This document shows positions 3,084 to 11,426 of a DNA stretch of 64,000 nucleotides, piece by piece. The stretch's first letter is position 1. The number at the start of each line of letters is the position of its first letter. The position numbers and the translations under genes were made by a program. Where the stretch lies: the sequence record MN988561.1; one strand, 5' to 3'. Under the pieces are notes generated by a model, which did no database searches, had not been told where the DNA came from, and saw only the letters and a list, made by a program, of their open reading frames with translations.

Positions 3084-3127
3084 AATGCAGATTAGCGATA
3101 CAGATAATGGCATTGCTAATCTGCATT
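3084..3127. repeat. 16-bp intergenic inverted repeat (hairpin)
   Basis: AATGCAGATTAGCGAT (3084-3099) pairs with ATTGCTAATCTGCATT (3112-3127), one G-T pair. Confidence 0.85.
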
Positions 3128-3367
3128 GATTTCTGGGTAGCAGTCCTGAAATATGGTTTCAGACTATGGTGAATAAGATGTTTCAAGACAACGTATCAAA
3201 GGTCCTCAAGCCTTCCTCTGAGTGGAGCGTTCTGAAGAACGTTACTGTTATGGATCCTGATGGATGGGATCGTCAGAACTTCGAGATCAGTTGGAATGAA
3301 TTGATCTCAGAGGAAGAATTCGATCGACGTGCAATGATGTCAACTGTACTCTTTGTTAGGAAAGACG

Positions 3368-4096
3368 ATGTTCAATCTGACATTAGCTAAATTTGTACTC
3401 GAAGCTCATAAGTCTGATAAAGACATCACCAGTCGTAATGGATACGGTGGATACAATATCCACAAGGAATCTTATGGATTTCTTCAGAAGATTGAGAAGA
3501 AGTTCGGAGCTAAGAGTGTAGCTGATCTCGAACGAATGATCAAGAAAGAAGAGACCAGACGTAAGACTCCTGTACCAGATCCTAATCCGATCTACAAGAA
3601 TCAGCGTGCTCGGTATCGTCTTCTCAGAGACTATCTTGGAAATAGTTCAGACCTGAATGTTTACATCAGCAGCCAGGAATGGGACGTACATAACTATTTA
3701 GGTCAAGGATGGGTTGAGAAATTTAAGAGTGATTCCATTCTCCACCGTTGGTGCTGGAATGTGATGAAGCTCCAGTTTGATCTCGATGCTTTGATCATCA
3801 AAGTGCGTACTCATTCTAATGTTGTAGGCTTCGAGAAAACTAATGAAGAGAATGATATCACCTGGACTGAATTCGTCCTAGGTGAGCAAGCTCTCAATAA
3901 GTATATTGAGATCCTGGAGATCCGTGCTAATCGTAAAGCTGAACGTGAGTACGAAGAGCATCAAGAGTATCTTCGTCGTCTAGCTATTGAAGATTGGAAA
4001 CGTGAACAGTTAGCTAAGATTCGTCTTGTACAAATCAGAGACGATGTCAAGGATAAGTCTCGAGCTGACAAAAGGAAGAGGAGAGTAGCAGTATGA
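3368..4096 (+). CDS. Hypothetical protein, charged helical C-terminus
   Basis: ORF track 3353..4096; ATG 3368 follows AGGA. Confidence 0.65.
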   Translation: MFNLTLAKFVLEAHKSDKDITSRNGYGGYNIHKESYGFLQKIEKKFGAKSVADLERMIKKEETRRKTPVPDPNPIYKNQRARYRLLRDYLGNSSDLNVYISSQEWDVHNYLGQGWVEKFKSDSILHRWCWNVMKLQFDLDALIIKVRTHSNVVGFEKTNEENDITWTEFVLGEQALNKYIEILEIRANRKAEREYEEHQEYLRRLAIEDWKREQLAKIRLVQIRDDVKDKSRADKRKRRVAV

Positions 4097-4785
4097 CTAA
4101 GATTCGACATATTTCTTTCGACGTATGGAATACTCTAGTAATTCCTAATCCAGATTATGCCAGAGCACGATCCATGTACCTTGGTAAGGTATTCGATATG
4201 GTCTCGGAGGATTCTGCTAAGCTCTACTCGAGAGTTAAAAAGTGGATCGATGAACTTGCTGTCCAGACTGGTATGGGTCCTGATGCTGAGAGCAATGTAC
4301 TCATGCTTCTGAATACGGCTGATCGTTATGCAGATCCTCAGGAGATCCTTATTAACTTTGAGAATCTCTTCTTCAAGTATCCTCCGATTATTCATCATGC
4401 AGTACGTGATGGACTTCGTACGCTGAAGCATCACGGGTATACGTTCTCCGTTGCTAGCAATAGCAATTTCATATCTGGCAGAACGATGACTAAGTTCATT
4501 CATGCTGAATTTGGATGCATGGCTTATGAAGTTTACTCTGATCTCGAAGGTTATGCTAAGCCTCATCTCAGATTCTTTGAAGAAGTATTTCATGGTGCGA
4601 GGTTACAAGGTCTCGCAGACTACTCGAGTGAAATTCTACATGTCGGAGATCACGAGATCTGTGACGTGAAGGGTGCAAGCGACTACGGATTTAAGTCATT
4701 ACTTTTCACCAATCCTGAAGATATGTCCAAAGTTATTAAGAGAGTCCAGCAAAATGAACAACCACCAAGTGTATTATGCGCATAA
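4093..4785 (+). CDS. HAD-superfamily hydrolase
   Basis: Motif I ISFDVWNTL, motif II SVASNSN, motif III KPH, motif IV HVGDHEICDVKGA. Confidence 0.9.
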   Translation: MTKIRHISFDVWNTLVIPNPDYARARSMYLGKVFDMVSEDSAKLYSRVKKWIDELAVQTGMGPDAESNVLMLLNTADRYADPQEILINFENLFFKYPPIIHHAVRDGLRTLKHHGYTFSVASNSNFISGRTMTKFIHAEFGCMAYEVYSDLEGYAKPHLRFFEEVFHGARLQGLADYSSEILHVGDHEICDVKGASDYGFKSLLFTNPEDMSKVIKRVQQNEQPPSVLCA

Positions 4786-5608
4786 ATTTACTTCTATGGA
4801 AGATCTTCCATTCGATGCTGTAGACTACTGTGCTCTTAAGTTCGGATCTGACGAGGTAGCTCGTCGATTTGGATATGAATTAGCTGAGAAGTTCTTCGAG
4901 GAACATTCCAGTCGAATCGTGACGAATCATTGTGCAGTGATTCCATCTCCTTATAACTTCGTACCGAATGCAGCAACCATTCTATCGAAGCATTTCATTA
5001 ATCGTCTGAATGAACTCATCGTTGAGGTCAATGGCGATTACGTTGACTACGTTAGAATCCATCGTAAGGTCACATATACTGGTGACTTTGGTAAGCTCAA
5101 TGAGGATGCTCGTCGAAAGCTTATTGGACAGGATTCATTCTATGTCAACAAGCAGATTCTGAAGAATAAGCTCCTGATCTACTTGGACGACGTGATCATT
5201 ACTGGTGCTCACGAAGATCGTCTCAAGGAAGTCATGGTCAAGAACAAGATGAAGAATGATTGTTTCTTCGTCTACTATGGTAAGTACTTCGGTACTGAAC
5301 CTACGATCGAGAATAAGATCAACTTCGGAGGTATTGAAACTGTCGAAGATTATGTTAATTTTATTACCGATCGAGATCATCTCATTGTTCGTCCGATCAA
5401 GTACCTCCTAAGTCTACCTAATGAACAATTTAAGTTCTATCTCAACAAGACAAGTAGAACTCGTCTTGAGGAACTATTCCACTCATGCTTAGGTGAAGGG
5501 TACAATCGTATTCCTCAGTACCAGGAGAATTTTGTAGCTCTGAGAGATCAGGTCAAGTATCTGTCTGAAGAGAATAGAGTATCTCGAATTTATGACAAGG
5601 TAGGTTAA
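4754..5608 (+). CDS. ComF-like phosphoribosyltransferase (PRTase_3-like)
   Basis: PRPP-binding loop LIYLDDVIITGAHE; N-terminal Y..LKFGSDEVARRFGYELA; ATG 4754 likely start. Confidence 0.75.
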   Translation: MNNHQVYYAHKFTSMEDLPFDAVDYCALKFGSDEVARRFGYELAEKFFEEHSSRIVTNHCAVIPSPYNFVPNAATILSKHFINRLNELIVEVNGDYVDYVRIHRKVTYTGDFGKLNEDARRKLIGQDSFYVNKQILKNKLLIYLDDVIITGAHEDRLKEVMVKNKMKNDCFFVYYGKYFGTEPTIENKINFGGIETVEDYVNFITDRDHLIVRPIKYLLSLPNEQFKFYLNKTSRTRLEELFHSCLGEGYNRIPQYQENFVALRDQVKYLSEENRVSRIYDKVG

Positions 5609-5802
5609 TGATTAATAAAATTGAGATCACTGAGCAGGAGTCAATAGAATTCAAACTTGAATTCGATCTTGCTGAAGTACGTAAATCTAACTATGTTATG
5701 GTCCCTATCAGTCTAGCTCGTAAGATTGATGCGTACTTCACAGAGGAGTTCAAGCGTAATCCTACGTTTGATCCTACGACTAACACCTTCAAGTAATCAT
5801 CG

Positions 5803-5836
5803 GCCCTCATCTATGAAAGTAGGTGAGGGCTATTTT
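5803..5836 (+). terminator. Intrinsic terminator
   Basis: GCCCTCATCTA-tgaaag-TAGGTGAGGGC followed by TATTTT. Confidence 0.8.
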
Positions 5837-5856
5837 CATGCATCATAGGTGGAACC

Positions 5857-6420
5857 ATGATCTTTAGTCTTAGTAATTCAGAATACTTCAGTCTTGCAGA
5901 TGCAGTATGCACAGCTGAAGACTCTCAAGGTCGAGTACCTGTTAACAAGAATATCGTCAGGAAACTTATTACATATCTCGAAGCTGAGAAGTTCTTTAAT
6001 CTCGGTACGGTATGTTGTGTATTGCTACCAGTCGAAGATGGTCTACTATTGATTCGTCGTAATCGTAAGAGTGATCCTGGATTTGGTATGGTAGCACTTC
6101 CTGGTGGATTCCAGAAGGGTAAACAAGCTCAAAATATGTACGATGCTGCAGTAGAAGAAGTCCTAGAAGAGACAGGGATCGTAATTCATAAAGAGAATCT
6201 AAAGCTCGTGTACGGCGATACGGACGAATATGAGCACAATGTTCTATTCTTCTTGCATAATGGTCTACTTGGTAAGGCATCAATGTACATTGAGAAATTC
6301 GTACCTTCAGATGACGAGGTATCGGAGCTAGTCTACATTACTGAGCCTGTTGATACTGCATTCCCAATGCATAGTGAACAGATCAAGAAATTCTTCGAGA
6401 AGAAGTTCGCTCGACGATAG
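5857..6420 (+). CDS. Nudix hydrolase
   Basis: LLLIRR...ALPGGF...AAVEEVLEETG Nudix box. Confidence 0.9.
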   Translation: MIFSLSNSEYFSLADAVCTAEDSQGRVPVNKNIVRKLITYLEAEKFFNLGTVCCVLLPVEDGLLLIRRNRKSDPGFGMVALPGGFQKGKQAQNMYDAAVEEVLEETGIVIHKENLKLVYGDTDEYEHNVLFFLHNGLLGKASMYIEKFVPSDDEVSELVYITEPVDTAFPMHSEQIKKFFEKKFARR

Positions 6421-7927: not shown

Positions 7928-8719
7928 ATGAATAATCCTTTCAGCAAGAACATGATGGACCGTATGTTCAAGCAGGTCGACGGTGTCGTCTGGGACCTGA
8001 TGTCTGGTTCGAAGATCGGTATCAAGACGAAGGAAGGTATTGCTACTGTCGATCTCAATCTCGAAGATGAGACTGCAGCAGTAGCTCCTGTCAAAACGAC
8101 TCGTCGTAAGGCAGGTGCAGAACCTGTAGCTCCTCTCGCTATTCCTACTCCGTCTCCGATCATGGAAGCTCCGGATGCTCAGGTTTCGATCAATCTGTTC
8201 GATGACTTCGGTATGGCTCTGCCTGCATTCGCTCAATCGACTCCTGTCGAGGCTATCGGTCTCGGCGACATGATCTGGAACTCGGCTCAGAATCGTGTCA
8301 TGGGATGGGTCGTCAAGGTCAGTCCCAATCGTAAGAGCTTCAAGGTCCTCAAGACGGATGGTACTCGTAGCGAGTGGTCTCCTCCGAAGGTCAATGTACT
8401 CGGATTCGAGACTGGTACGATGGTCGTACGTTCTCTGATCAACATGCTTCCTGGTGGAGCTACTGGTCAGAATGGTCTGGAAGGTATGCAGTCGTCTCTC
8501 GGTCAGATGCTCATGATGTCGTCCATGATGGGTGGCAGTGAAGGTGACTCTGAGAACATGCTCAAGGACATCATGCCGATGATGCTCATGTCGCAGATGG
8601 GCATCGGTGGTGCTCAGGGTGGTATGGGTCAGATGATGCAGACCATGATGATGATGAAAATGATGGGTGGTATGAATCGCGGTAGCGGTGGTACCAAGCG
8701 TAGTTTTTTCGACAACTAA
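7928..8719 (+). CDS. Met/Gly-rich low-complexity protein (263 aa, short isoform)
   Basis: AAGGAG SD then ATG 7928; central SH3/KOW-like segment (IGLGDMIWNS...GWVVKV); C-terminus GQMMQTMMMMKMMGGM. Confidence 0.85.
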   Translation: MNNPFSKNMMDRMFKQVDGVVWDLMSGSKIGIKTKEGIATVDLNLEDETAAVAPVKTTRRKAGAEPVAPLAIPTPSPIMEAPDAQVSINLFDDFGMALPAFAQSTPVEAIGLGDMIWNSAQNRVMGWVVKVSPNRKSFKVLKTDGTRSEWSPPKVNVLGFETGTMVVRSLINMLPGGATGQNGLEGMQSSLGQMLMMSSMMGGSEGDSENMLKDIMPMMLMSQMGIGGAQGGMGQMMQTMMMMKMMGGMNRGSGGTKRSFFDN

Positions 8720-8780
8720 GCTCTGATTCTGGAGAGGATGGATCTCGGATTAGACTCCGAGATCTGTCTTCGGAGCTTAG
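8704..8780 (+). other. Predicted programmed -1 ribosomal frameshift signal
   Basis: Slippery heptamer T_TTT_TTC (8704-8710) in phase with 7928..8719; 5-nt spacer; stem-loop 8716-8780; the -1 frame opens right after TAG 8701-8703 and stays open to 9147. Confidence 0.75.
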
Positions 8781-9147
8781 ACATCTCCGTATCGTAGGAG
8801 AGACATATAGATCACGGTATGCACAAAATGTGTATCGTGATGTTAAAGAAAATGATCCAGTCATCCTCGAATGGGAGAAGACCAATCGTATGGATGGATG
8901 TGCTCATAAGGTCTTCGTCTACGATCCAATCAATGAACGAGGTACCCATGTAGGGTATGTCGACCGAAATCAAGCAGCTAGGATTGTTAGTGAACTTGCC
9001 AAGTATAAATACACTGAGAAAACTCATCGTATTGTTGGTAAGATCACGAGGAACAATCCTGGTAAGTACAACGAAATCGAGATACTAGGACTCATCAGCA
9101 CTACAGAGTCTGAACAGCATCTCAAAGATTATTATAGAAGGAAATAA
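8710..9147 (+). CDS. HIRAN domain, predicted as the -1 frame extension of 7928..8719
   Basis: IVGETYR...VILEWEKTNRMDGCAHKV...HVGYVDRNQAARI matches the HIRAN pattern (V.G..Y...V.L..E..N..D..A..V....GY.....A); IVGETYR lies upstream of the only canonical in-frame start (GTG 8830), which has no SD. Confidence 0.75.
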   Translation, partial: RQLSSDSGEDGSRIRLRDLSSELRHLRIVGETYRSRYAQNVYRDVKENDPVILEWEKTNRMDGCAHKVFVYDPINERGTHVGYVDRNQAARIVSELAKYKYTEKTHRIVGKITRNNPGKYNEIEILGLISTTESEQHLKDYYRRK

Positions 9148-9151
9148 CCAC

Positions 9152-10075
9152 ATGGGTGGCGGACGTTTTGATACTAATGCATATGCAAGCCTGTCGACTG
9201 CTCGTACAGTTCGTACTGACGGTACTCGTATGCATCACACTGAAGTCTTCAAAGCTAAGGTCGTGGATAGCAAGTTCTCTCCTCGCAGCATCAAGGTACG
9301 TGAGTCGGTTGACTCTGAGACATCTCCGAATTCTCGTCCGATCATCGTCGGTCTTGACTTCAGTGGATCGATGGGATCGATTGCAGGTGAGATGGCTAAC
9401 AATCAGCTTGGTAAGCTGATGGAGAATGTCGTTGGTACGAAGGCAGTAGCTGATCCTCATCTGCTGTTCCTCGGTATCGATGACGTTCATGCATCCTTCT
9501 CGTCTGAATCTCTTCAGGCTACTCAGTTCGAAGCTGATATTCGTATCGCTGAACAGCTGACTGAACTGAAGAATATCGGTCGAGGTGGAGGTAATGGATT
9601 CGAATCCTACAATCTCGCATGGTACTTCGCTGCATACAAGACGAAGATCGACTCCTTCAAGAAGCGTGGTAAGAAGGGACTCCTCTTCACTATCGGCGAT
9701 GAAGGTGTACCTGCAGATTTGAATGCATCTCATCTTGAGACTGTCTTCGGATCAGGTGATCTTCCTGTTCTCAGCAACGATAGTCTCCTGAGCACTGTTC
9801 GTCAGGAATGGGATGTATTCCACATCATTGCTGAGGAAGGTGACTACTGCAGAAATGGTAGTAGCCATGTCAGCAGGCAGTGGTATGGTCTCCTCGGCAA
9901 TCGTGCTATTCTGATGAGCGACTATCGCTACGTCTCGGATATCATCGTTGCTACGATCGCTGTCAATGAAGGTCGTGATCCGGATGATCTCCTGTCTTCT
10001 TACGAGGACAAGGAAGCTCGTAAGGTTATCGAGCGTGCACTCTACGGTATGCGAGATTTCGCTAAGTCTCTGTAA
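9152..10075 (+). CDS. von Willebrand factor A (vWA) domain protein
   Basis: MIDAS IIVGLDFSGSMG, GGGNGFESY, LLFTIGDEG; N-terminal MGGGRF. Confidence 0.88.
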   Translation: MGGGRFDTNAYASLSTARTVRTDGTRMHHTEVFKAKVVDSKFSPRSIKVRESVDSETSPNSRPIIVGLDFSGSMGSIAGEMANNQLGKLMENVVGTKAVADPHLLFLGIDDVHASFSSESLQATQFEADIRIAEQLTELKNIGRGGGNGFESYNLAWYFAAYKTKIDSFKKRGKKGLLFTIGDEGVPADLNASHLETVFGSGDLPVLSNDSLLSTVRQEWDVFHIIAEEGDYCRNGSSHVSRQWYGLLGNRAILMSDYRYVSDIIVATIAVNEGRDPDDLLSSYEDKEARKVIERALYGMRDFAKSL

Positions 10076-10100: not shown

Positions 10101-10142
10101 TAGGTGAACTAGAGCTCCCTAAGAGATTTCTTCTTAGGGAGC
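10101..10142 (+). promoter_or_regulatory. Degenerate motif copy 3, embedded in an 11-bp hairpin
   Basis: TAGGTGAACTA-13nt-GATTTCTTCTT; GCTCCCTAAGA (10114-10124) pairs with TCTTAGGGAGC (10132-10142). Confidence 0.55.
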
Positions 10143-10175: not shown

Positions 10176-11426
10176 ATGAAGAATGCTCATATCGTTATTG
10201 GTGCACAATACGGAGATGAAGGGAAGGGTAGTACTGTTAATCTCCTTGCTCAGAAATATCCAGATGCATTGAATGTCAGGTTCAATGGTGGAGCTCAAGC
10301 AGGACATACTGTGACACTCGAGGATGGTCGTCGTCACGTATTCTCTCACTTTGGATCAGGTAGTCTCCAAGGACTGGATACGTATTTCAACGAGTCTTCC
10401 ATCGTGAATCCTTGGAGATTCAAGGATGAGCATACTGTAATCATGAGTGAATTCGGTCTGAGTCCTCTTGTTTTTGTACATGAGAATGCTCTGGTCACGT
10501 CGCCATACGATATGGCAATCAATCAACTCTGGGAGACTTGCCGTAGTGGAGATCGTCACGGATCCTGCGGTATGGGTATTTATGAGACGATCCTGAGATC
10601 TCGTAATCCTGAATCTCTTGTACGAGTACATGAACTAGTTTATCATGTCTTTGAAGACATCAATGATCGGTACAAAGAATATGCGTATCGTAGACTCCAA
10701 GATGTCAGGGATTTTCATCCTGACTGTGAAGAATTCATTAAGGATACTGAGAAATTTATTGATAGTGAAGATGTTACTCGTCAGTTCTTTCTCGACTATT
10801 CATTCTTCATGTCGATGATTAATGTTGTTAAAGACGATATTAATATCTATCCGCAGTACGATACTGTGATCTTCGAAGGAGCTCAAGGTCTCCAACTCGA
10901 CCAGAATTATGTTGAGTATCTAGGTAATCTGCCTCATGCTACTCCATCCAATCCTGGACTAGGTAACAAGTCACTCCACGATGCATTCGAGAAGTATGGT
11001 CTCACTGAAGACCATATTCACGTGTACTATCTGACGAGATTCTATCAGACTCGTCACGGTAATGGACCATTCGATCGTGAGGTTAATCCTGACGCTCTAG
11101 GCGACATTGTTGATCTCACCAATATCGACAATCCTCATCAAGGATCGATTCGGTATGCTCCACTCAATGTCTTCAGTCTACTCGAAGCAGTCGAGTTCGA
11201 TCTTCAGTACATCGATAACTGCAGACCATATCTTGTGGTCACATGTGTTGACCAAGTTGTCAACGATGAAGTTGTCATCAAAGCATTGCATGATGACAGT
11301 CACGTTAAGATTCCATTCGAGGATTTGAAGATGATCCTACGGGATAACTTTGAATTCATGTACGGTATCTTCTACTCTGACGGAAAATCTATGAAATACG
11401 AGGAACATCTTTATGTCGCAGCATGA
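10176..11426 (+). CDS. purA: Adenylosuccinate synthetase-like protein (divergent PurA clade)
   Basis: GAQYGDEGKG, RFNGGAQAGHT, IFEGAQG, TRHGNGPF; Asp-binding loop and TKLD motif diverged (TNIDNPHQGSIRY; TCVD). Confidence 0.85.
   Translation: MKNAHIVIGAQYGDEGKGSTVNLLAQKYPDALNVRFNGGAQAGHTVTLEDGRRHVFSHFGSGSLQGLDTYFNESSIVNPWRFKDEHTVIMSEFGLSPLVFVHENALVTSPYDMAINQLWETCRSGDRHGSCGMGIYETILRSRNPESLVRVHELVYHVFEDINDRYKEYAYRRLQDVRDFHPDCEEFIKDTEKFIDSEDVTRQFFLDYSFFMSMINVVKDDINIYPQYDTVIFEGAQGLQLDQNYVEYLGNLPHATPSNPGLGNKSLHDAFEKYGLTEDHIHVYYLTRFYQTRHGNGPFDREVNPDALGDIVDLTNIDNPHQGSIRYAPLNVFSLLEAVEFDLQYIDNCRPYLVVTCVDQVVNDEVVIKALHDDSHVKIPFEDLKMILRDNFEFMYGIFYSDGKSMKYEEHLYVAA

Follow-up and report, generated by a model that had tools for sequence, protein, structure and literature searches.

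In the genome of Rhizobium phage RHph_TM61 (MN988561; Kleczkowskaviridae, Cuauhnahuacvirus), a gene for a methionine-rich (Met-rich) protein is followed by a short open reading frame (ORF) for a HIRAN domain, and GenBank lists the two as separate hypothetical proteins. This raises the question of whether the locus holds two genes or a single gene expressed through programmed −1 ribosomal frameshifting (−1 PRF). We addressed this in the first 64 kb of the genome (hereafter the window), with coordinates identical to those of the record. Judged from sequence analysis, 7928..8719 and 8830..9147 very probably constitute one recoded gene, in which a −1 slip would yield a Met-rich–HIRAN fusion beside a short form. 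The computational evidence comprises the signal (heptamer, spacer and structure), a −1 frame that is open and lacks a start codon, the fold of the HIRAN domain, and conservation of the arrangement among diverged phages with differing heptamers.

Reading frames at the junction

The Met-rich gene ends AGT TTT TTC GAC AAC TAA, and the protein C terminus accordingly reads ...KRSFFDN. This end contains T_TTT_TTC, on which the tRNA-Phe in the P-site and that in the A-site are both able to re-pair in the −1 frame. Upstream, the −1 frame is closed by a TAG at 8701–8703; it is then open from 8704 to the TAA at 9145–9147. A first-pass annotation of the locus had described this gene end, the register of the heptamer and the limits of the −1 frame, and all three were confirmed on the sequence. 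The features of the junction are as follows.

7928..8719, plus strand: Met-rich gene, 0 frame, 263 amino acids (aa); EVB64_016, 'hypothetical protein' in GenBank
8704..8710, plus strand: slippery heptamer T_TTT_TTC, X_XXY_YYZ in the 0-frame register
8717..8719, plus strand: 0-frame stop TAA, two codons past the heptamer and within the base of a hairpin
8704..9147, plus strand: −1 ORF, 147 codons plus stop, with a linker (residues 1–25), HIRAN (about residues 27–132; nucleotides (nt) 8782–9099) and a C-terminal helix
8830..9147, plus strand: HIRAN gene as annotated; EVB64_017 in GenBank, 105 aa from GTG

The predicted products are a short form of 263 aa and a fusion of 406 aa (261 + 145), sizes that the first-pass annotation had given correctly. 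The fusion would read ...KRSFF-RQLSSDSGEDGSR..., with −1 reading resuming at codon 8710–8712 (R), and its predicted junction peptide is ...SFFRQLSSDSGEDGSR. The same two separate annotations recur in six further Cuauhnahuacvirus genomes, and none of the GenBank records examined carries a slippage annotation at this locus.

A HIRAN fold that begins upstream of the annotated start

The translated −1 ORF had earlier been noted to resemble HIRAN, and it matches the Pfam HIRAN family (PF08797) above the curated cut-off (E = 1.3e-8; 34.9 bits against a cut-off of 24.7; residues 32–110). The match begins 11 codons 5′ of GTG 8830, which is the earliest ATG, GTG or TTG of the −1 frame (residue 43). This GTG has no Shine–Dalgarno (SD) sequence of the GGAG type; the neighbouring genes have AAGGAG or GAAGGA. 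An AlphaFold (AF2) model of the −1 ORF, built from 18 relatives, reached a predicted local distance difference test (pLDDT) score of 83.3 and a predicted template modelling score (pTM) of 0.78. In this model, strand β1 spans residues 27–31 and the following helix residues 38–45, and the annotated start falls inside the fold. Pfam, AF2, Foldseek and the start scan agree with the earlier proposal that the first HIRAN strand lies 5′ of a start lacking an SD. Because reading from GTG 8830 would lose β1 and half of the first helix of the modelled domain, this start is probably mis-set.

When the model was compared with the Protein Data Bank (PDB) using Foldseek, the 16 best matches were all either the HIRAN domain of HLTF or the stand-alone protein lp_0118 (probability 1.0; template modelling score to target 0.55–0.74). 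A sequence profile of the 18 relatives finds the same two proteins in the PDB. Individually, 14 of the 19 −1 ORFs tested match Pfam HIRAN, and the ORFs of Ralstonia phage RP13 and Roseobacter phage RDJL3 do likewise.

The phage domain has the same fold as the HIRAN domains of HLTF/Rad5 and lp_0118 (PDB 3k2y) and keeps the VGxxY and NxxDxNA motifs. Opposite the NNPYDKNA motif of HLTF, the alignment places N61 and D64, which hardly vary within the family, and opposite the first Tyr of HLTF VGLRYY it places Y35. The domain of the window is diverged from known HIRAN domains, as seen in its Pfam score of 34.9 bits and in a Met, instead of an aromatic residue, before the Asp. In HLTF, the 3′-OH end is held by the Asp of the NxYDxNA motif and by stacking aromatics. 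By analogy with HLTF, the HIRAN part of the phage protein may bind 3′-OH DNA ends. In HLTF/Rad5, HIRAN is fused in-frame to an SNF2 ATPase, whereas at the phage locus it would be joined to the Met-rich protein by predicted recoding only.

A conserved hairpin downstream of the heptamer

A long hairpin is predicted to follow the heptamer at a short distance.

8716..8780, plus strand: two-tier stem-loop with a 5-nt spacer after the heptamer (RNAfold)

The outer stem (8716–8726/8770–8780) leads, via a 9-nt 5′ internal loop, to an inner stem (8736–8749/8756–8769) closed by a 6-nt loop (8750–8755). RNAfold thereby reproduced exactly the pairing that had been put forward in the first-pass annotation. 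Its predicted energy of −41.3 kcal/mol (z = −3.7) was equalled by none of 200 dinucleotide shuffles.

In a first sample of related loci, every heptamer locus forms a two-tier hairpin, which starts 0–7 nt (mostly 4–7) past the heptamer. The mean z score was −3.9 for the 21 heptamer loci, compared with −0.13 in the equivalent region of 22 loci without a heptamer. The hairpins of the relatives share the architecture of the window's hairpin and differ from it in sequence. RNAalifold, applied to a MAFFT alignment of all hairpins, found no consensus because the stems cannot be aligned by sequence; we therefore used per-sequence folding statistics and a gapless subgroup. The latter consisted of eight C_CCU_UUY loci, aligned on sequence alone and blind to structure. 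In this alignment, compensatory double changes occur in 10 of the 12 pairs of the inner helix. Overall, 87.5% of the inner-helix cells can pair, compared with 33–41% when the partners are slid, and 0 of 500 shuffles attained the observed values. The outer helix does not vary among these eight loci.

No Rfam family matches the hairpin. Two other identities were considered for it and rejected: a repeated genomic element, as no similar inverted repeat occurs elsewhere in the window, and an intrinsic terminator, as the hairpin lacks a 3′ T-tract and was not called by the terminator scan.

Two further elements are candidate stimulators.

8687..8692, plus strand: GGTGGT, 11 nt 5′ of the heptamer; possible weak SD-like stimulator
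8731–8735/8784–8788, plus strand: candidate pseudoknot-like pairing GGAGA/TCTCC; speculative

GGTGGT had been suggested as an upstream internal SD. The element is indeed present, and its duplex with the anti-SD is estimated at −6.4 kcal/mol. As a conserved internal SD it did not hold up: the mean duplex energy is −3.9 kcal/mol in the heptamer family and −3.1 kcal/mol in loci without a heptamer, and SD-like elements show no real enrichment upstream of the heptamer across the family. The GGAGA/TCTCC duplex of the window reaches −7.6 kcal/mol, against −3.9 kcal/mol for shuffled loops (fraction 0.03). Pairing of this type is not consistent family-wide (median fraction 0.2) and is suggestive in the window, L013 and L045.

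Rarity of the slip site in the genome

The T6 run at 8704–8709 is the sole A or T run of six or more in the 64-kb window, and the next 50 kb contain none (114 kb in total); the earlier remark that such a run is unusual in the window was an understatement. The expected number of these runs in the window is ~15 under a first-order Markov model and ~48 under independent bases. Codon usage at Phe-Phe pairs is similarly skewed. Among the 30 pairs in 77 long ORFs, 20 are written TTC_TTC and 9 TTC_TTT, and the only TTT_TTC is the slip site itself.

Homopolymers are depleted throughout the part of the genome that we scanned (the window and MN988561 64001–114000). A5 occurs 7 times (68 expected), T5 6 times (56 expected), G4 20 times (120 expected) and C4 twice (56 expected), and G5 and C5 are missing altogether. 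XXXYYYZ patterns in any frame number 31, against ~290 expected by our own estimate from base composition (~9-fold fewer).

Close and diverged relatives

The junction, with its T6 run and hairpin, is identical in seven independently assembled Cuauhnahuacvirus genomes, except for a C/T difference at loop position 8755. An error in the assembly of the homopolymer is therefore unlikely. These seven genomes are too alike for further inference. The segment 8400–8825 (425 nt), which covers the C-terminal third of the Met-rich protein, the junction and the linker, has four variable sites among the seven genomes; the flanking genes have 6–12 variable sites per 100 nt in the same genomes. This invariance may stem from a recent recombination sweep or from extra constraint. 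The hairpin also contains, in its entirety, a 19-codon 0-frame ORF (8738–8797; ATG 8738, straight after GGAGAGG), which is probably a coincidence. The polymorphism at 8755 leaves the residue unchanged in this small ORF and replaces L by F when read in the −1 frame.

To find more distant relatives, we compared the HIRAN ORF with 1.84 billion representative proteins; only five matched, among them P0003 at 38% identity. P0003 is called from an ATG at the counterpart of GTG 8830, and its source is a 655-bp contig, L012. At the end of the Met-rich gene of this contig (...GPFFRN*), CCT TTT TTC AGA AAC TAA presents the same heptamer, followed by two codons and the stop. The L012 hairpin differs in sequence and is predicted to be strong (−38.6 kcal/mol, z = −4.2). 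Its −1 frame is open from the heptamer onwards and encodes ELRRLRIVGS 5′ of the called start. A random-amplification primer, GTTTCCCAGTCACGATA, stands in inverted orientation at the two ends of L012 (1–17 and 639–655), which shows that this contig is one amplified fragment and that its ends do not belong to the phage.

The T_TTT_TTC pattern appears again in L013 and L015, which were found via homologues of the Met-rich protein. Across L012, L013 and L015, HIRAN identity to the window is 28–42%, T_TTT_TTC is kept with the stop one or two codons on, and the open −1 frame encodes ..EL[RQ]xLRIVG.. 5′ of any start. Pattern scans of IMG/VR for close homologues of the HIRAN ORF, run with the single protein and with a two-sequence alignment, gave no matches, and a word-indexed search for such homologues found nothing further.

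A family-wide survey

To extend the comparison, we drew on GenBank phages, IMG/VR and JGI metagenomes, which gave 100 distinct loci of the Met-rich family. At each locus, the stop of the Met-rich gene was located, in-frame heptamers were sought, and the three forward frames were scanned with a HIRAN profile built from −1 ORFs. The loci fall into four groups.

Canonical heptamer 0–4 codons before the stop, with a HIRAN ORF overlapping the stop: 35 of 100 loci
HIRAN with a near-canonical site (U_CCU_UUU_U or U_UUU): 3 of 100 loci
Heptamer without an adjacent HIRAN: 5 of 100 loci
Neither, with the phrog_2971 von Willebrand factor A (vWA)-like gene coming next directly: 57 of 100 loci

Heptamer and HIRAN are strongly associated across the 100 loci (Fisher p = 4e-18). 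All 38 adjacent HIRAN ORFs lie in the −1 frame and overlap the upstream stop. In 7 of 19 loci, the stretch from the heptamer to HIRAN β1 contains no ATG, GTG or TTG; the remaining loci have such codons at scattered, non-conserved positions.

The heptamers of the 35 loci are C_CCU_UUC (18), U_UUU_UUC (8), C_CCU_UUU (5), G_GGU_UUC/U (2), A_AAU_UUU (1) and A_AAA_AAG (1). U_UUU_UUC stands at the same place in seven relatives (L012, L013, L015, L057, L074, L099 and L151), and 27 further loci have other canonical heptamers. The T6 run, which had seemed special as a homopolymer, is thus not a conserved feature, as most relatives use C_CCU_UUC. In most heptamers of the family, runs do not exceed three, and every heptamer is in codon register; the shared mechanism would therefore have to be ribosomal and not transcriptional. 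Given the variety of the heptamers, neither sequencing errors in homopolymers nor slippage during transcription can be the general cause.

An in-frame Met-rich–HIRAN fusion was not found among the best 120 members of the Met-rich family (all ≤302 aa), nor among the matches of the HIRAN ORF in the 1.84 billion representative proteins. The conservation of heptamer and hairpin in related phages, together with the lack of in-frame fusion homologues, is the pattern that the first-pass annotation had proposed to look for, and it favours programmed frameshifting.

Individual loci show variations on this arrangement. In RP13 (L005, 3627–4064), G_GGU_UUC stands directly before the stop, and the −1 ORF has an ATG with a GGGAGAG SD; the fusion and a free HIRAN protein may therefore both be made. 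In one lineage, A_AAA_AAG TAG ends the Met-rich gene, and L093 goes on in the −1 frame into HIRAN. L035–L037 (IMG/VR, 3097–3342) have a 79-codon −1 ORF without a recognisable domain and a HIRAN gene 2 kb further on; a different module may be appended in these loci. The −1 extension of RDJL3 (L007, 3573–4382) has a DnaJ-type CXXCXGXG zinc finger before HIRAN, and in L099, L151 and L059 100–140 extra residues, with no fold assigned, precede it. In L060, which is near-identical to L059 (both IMG/VR), the HIRAN-like ORF is shifted to +1 and the −1 ORF ends after 43 codons; an indel, or else a sequencing error, in one of the two contigs would account for this difference.

Alternative explanations

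Several observations weigh against a recoded gene. The efficiency data for heptamers come from E. coli, while the host here is Rhizobium. The hairpin contrast was smaller in a second sample, drawn from metagenome contigs (mean z −2.0 versus −0.8), and L093, L145 and L151 have no strong structure downstream of the heptamer. In the linker, substitutions are spread evenly over the three codon positions, which makes the codon-position test uninformative; the linker is taken as coding because it contains no stops, has a frame-preserving length and keeps a few conserved residues. RP13 has an ATG with a convincing SD, 19 codons past G_GGU_UUC, the sole such case among 19 loci, and a few other loci have a GTG or ATG in the linker; independent initiation of HIRAN is therefore possible in at least one lineage. 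Finally, Phe-Phe or Pro-Phe near the C terminus is kept also in family members without HIRAN, and the heptamer is therefore partly explained by the protein sequence.

The last two points bear on the alternative that the HIRAN ORF is a separate gene with its own initiation, at GTG 8830, ATT 8749 or CTG 8764, maybe coupled to termination at TAA 8717, and that a conserved Phe-Phe motif gave rise to the heptamer as a side effect. GenBank does start the gene at GTG 8830, and GGAGAGG (8731–8737) lies 11 nt 5′ of ATT 8749, in addition to the proper start of RP13 and the Phe-Phe or Pro-Phe of members lacking HIRAN. However, GTG 8830 has no SD and would cut β1 and half of helix 1 off a confidently modelled fold; ATT and CTG are not conserved, and L012, L023, L026, L028, L040 and L044 are also without a canonical start. 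The candidate SD and starts are, moreover, locked in the −41 kcal/mol hairpin. A separate gene has no need of a constant −1 frame (38/38), of a frame open up to the heptamer or of an upstream X_XXY_YYZ (p = 4e-18), and conserved Phe-Phe does not account for the codons used, since this genome writes the pair as TTC_TTC or TTC_TTT in 29 of 30 cases. We consider separate initiation improbable.

The same fusion could also arise if RNA polymerase slipped on T6 and added one U to some transcripts, which standard translation would then read in-frame. Slippage on A/T runs is an established route to such products (review PMC5009743), and the site is a homopolymer in a genome that otherwise avoids such runs. 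Against this, 27 of the 35 related loci have no run longer than three (C_CCU_UUC/U, G_GGU_UUY, A_AAU_UUU), the heptamers always keep the X_XXY_YYZ register, which is relevant to ribosomes and not to polymerases, and a structure 5–7 nt downstream has the geometry of a ribosomal stimulator. T6 is also short for efficient slippage by bacterial RNA polymerase, which typically occurs on runs of ~9 or more. This makes transcriptional slippage very unlikely. It is also conceivable that nothing is programmed here: the HIRAN ORF would be a decaying remnant, or an assembly error in T6 would hide a plain fusion, and the hairpin would be a terminator or RNase III site. Homopolymers are prone to sequencing error, the hairpin follows the stop codon in a terminator-like position, and L060 is a frame-disrupted copy of its relative L059. 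Yet the seven genomes share T6, the −1 offset recurs in relatives whose heptamers are not homopolymers, and none of the relatives examined has an in-frame fusion. Throughout, the HIRAN ORF has remained intact, with the N and D of NxxD conserved and a high-confidence fold. The hairpin lacks a T-tract, the terminator scan is silent, and the helix covaries while being −1-frame coding sequence. We regard this last explanation as extremely improbable.

The Met-rich protein and its genomic neighbourhood

The Met-rich family comprises at least 400 proteins of 200–300 aa from phage and metagenome sources and has no entry in Pfam, PHROGs or NCBIfam. The protein of the window has no match in Pfam, PHROGs, NCBIfam or PDB sequences. 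Its AF2 model (pLDDT 73) shows an N-terminal β-rich domain followed by three Met-rich helices, and the C-terminal third is rich in Met and Gly. Foldseek searches with this model found nothing in the PDB at E ≤0.001, only weak SH3/Tudor-like pieces, and a search of BFVD returned uncharacterised family members only. One member, P0054 (302 aa, from a 22-kb Logan contig), has an in-frame topoisomerase-type C4 zinc finger (PF01396), which is a second link of the family to DNA binding.

The next gene downstream belongs to the same operon-like block.

9152..10075, plus strand: vWA-like gene (phrog_2971, E = 8.8e-37) with a DxSGSMG motif

This phrog_2971 gene directly follows the Met-rich gene where HIRAN is absent. 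The commonest neighbours among 26 diverse loci are genes for a bifunctional nicotinamide mononucleotide (NMN) adenylyltransferase/NUDIX protein (11), an adenylosuccinate-synthetase-like protein (10) and NAMPT (4). In the window, the neighbours are a haloacid dehalogenase (HAD) hydrolase, a ComF-like phosphoribosyltransferase (PRTase_3) and a NUDIX protein (4093–6420), together with a diverged PurA-like gene. The Met-rich and vWA-like genes are thus embedded in an island of nucleotide and nicotinamide adenine dinucleotide (NAD) metabolism. NAMPT and NMN adenylyltransferase (NMNAT)/NUDIX form the NARP2 NAD+-reconstitution pathway, which counters NAD+-depleting defence; the paper that describes it makes no mention of the neighbouring genes (bioRxiv 10.1101/2024.02.11.579819).

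The 'adenylosuccinate synthetase' at 10176–11426 has diverged strongly: it scores 99.6 bits against a PurA cut-off of 402 bits and gives a weak, partial match to a PurZ model. A PurA-like gene lies just 3′ of the Met-rich and vWA-like pair in 10 of the 26 loci, for example in L014 and in Vibrio phage pv27, in which it is annotated as PurZ-type. Between the vWA-like and PurA-like genes of the window, a perfect 11-bp inverted repeat (GCTCCCTAAGA / TCTTAGGGAGC; 10114–10142) encloses a 7-nt loop and is a possible terminator or processing site.

Discussion

We propose the following sequence of events for the recoded gene. By default, most ribosomes would end at TAA 8717 and release the 263-aa Met-rich protein. 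A fraction of them would be slowed by the long hairpin, which would stand 5 nt downstream, at the mRNA entrance. The slowed ribosomes would slip one base back on U_UUU_UUC, with the P-site tRNA-Phe moving from UUU to UUU and the A-site tRNA from UUC to UUU. The 0-frame stop, 0–4 codons on, may add to the pause, judging from known 'shifty stop' effects. Slipped ribosomes would then read a linker of ~25 residues, encoded by the hairpin itself, and continue into HIRAN. The outcome would be a 406-aa Met-rich–HIRAN protein that differs from the short form only past residue 261. We infer that the slip takes place, and that it does so at a set ratio.

The mechanism is that of a textbook −1 PRF cassette. 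Its novelty lies in the family of genes that uses it, in the domain that is appended, and in how widely the arrangement is conserved while the heptamer turns over. We found no paper linking HIRAN with frameshifting or slippery sites, and the Atkins 2016 review (PMC5009743) contains nothing on such a link. In logic, the closest parallels are G/GT of phage lambda, with its equivalents in most long-tailed phages, and T7 10A/10B; in signal, they are dnaX and IS3/IS911. In G/GT, too, a −1 slip on an X_XXY_YYZ heptamer near the end of the upstream ORF gives short and C-terminally extended forms from one mRNA, and the arrangement rather than the sequence is kept across very different phages and is routinely missed by gene callers. 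The proteins are unrelated, however: the lambda extension binds the tape measure, whereas here the extension is a HIRAN DNA-binding domain. Lambda uses G_GGA_AAG, whereas the Met-rich loci use the X_XXU_UUY class, usually with a long downstream hairpin. G/GT is also near-universal in its family, whereas only about one-third of the Met-rich family has the extension.

In the T7 10A/10B pair, ribosomes shift to −1 at Phe codons that lie a few codons from the stop, and a minority of the molecules thereby gain a C-terminal extension. The predicted slip at the Met-rich locus resembles it in using Phe codons near the stop of the major form and in extending a minority. The extension of 10B is a short structural tail on a capsid protein, whereas here a complete folded domain would be added to a non-structural protein. 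The dnaX and IS3/IS911 OrfAB signals share with the Met-rich loci a heptamer and a stem-loop or pseudoknot 5–8 nt downstream. In dnaX, frameshifting shortens the protein, whereas at the Met-rich locus it would extend it, and the upstream SD-like stimulator of dnaX/IS911 is not a conserved feature of the Met-rich family. OrfAB likewise joins a DNA-binding part to another module. Sharma et al., who assayed the full set of 64 heptamers in E. coli, list H_HH.U_UU.Y, the class of the window's heptamer, among the most efficient and report U_UU.U_UU.C in IS3-family elements (PMC4066793).

By analogy with G/GT and T7 10A/10B, the frameshift may serve to give a sub-stoichiometric share of a Met-rich assembly a DNA-end-binding module. 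A wider scenario, which we offer tentatively and hold to be rather doubtful, is that of a two-isoform phage machine. It would self-assemble via the Met-rich helices, carry a fixed minority of HIRAN 3′-end sensors and, with the vWA-like protein that is always its neighbour, work on DNA ends; it might, for instance, protect or process replication or nick ends. Placed in an NAD/nucleotide island (NMNAT/NUDIX, NAMPT or PRTase, PurA-like), it would help phages to cope with host defence, and the Phe-Phe or Pro-Phe 'motif' of the family would in part be a footprint of the slip site.

The locus adds a widely distributed, very probably recoded family to the short list of conserved phage frameshifts, essentially those of tail chaperones, of some capsid proteins and of transposases. 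For the HIRAN gene, the annotation is corrected in the seven Cuauhnahuacvirus genomes and in phages such as RP13 and RDJL3, in which truncated or separate ORFs had been called. Homopolymers are avoided to an extreme degree in this genome, the slip site being the only exception, which shows that accidental slippage is selected against. The family is also a natural recoding experiment, in which function is kept while heptamers turn over and the hairpin drifts with compensatory changes. Because the frameshift junction is never replaced by a plain fusion in the relatives examined, the ratio of the two forms appears to be under selection. For the Met-rich protein, which has no recognisable domain, the arrangement provides a first functional handle: in one-third of the members, it would be joined to a module that binds DNA 3′ ends.

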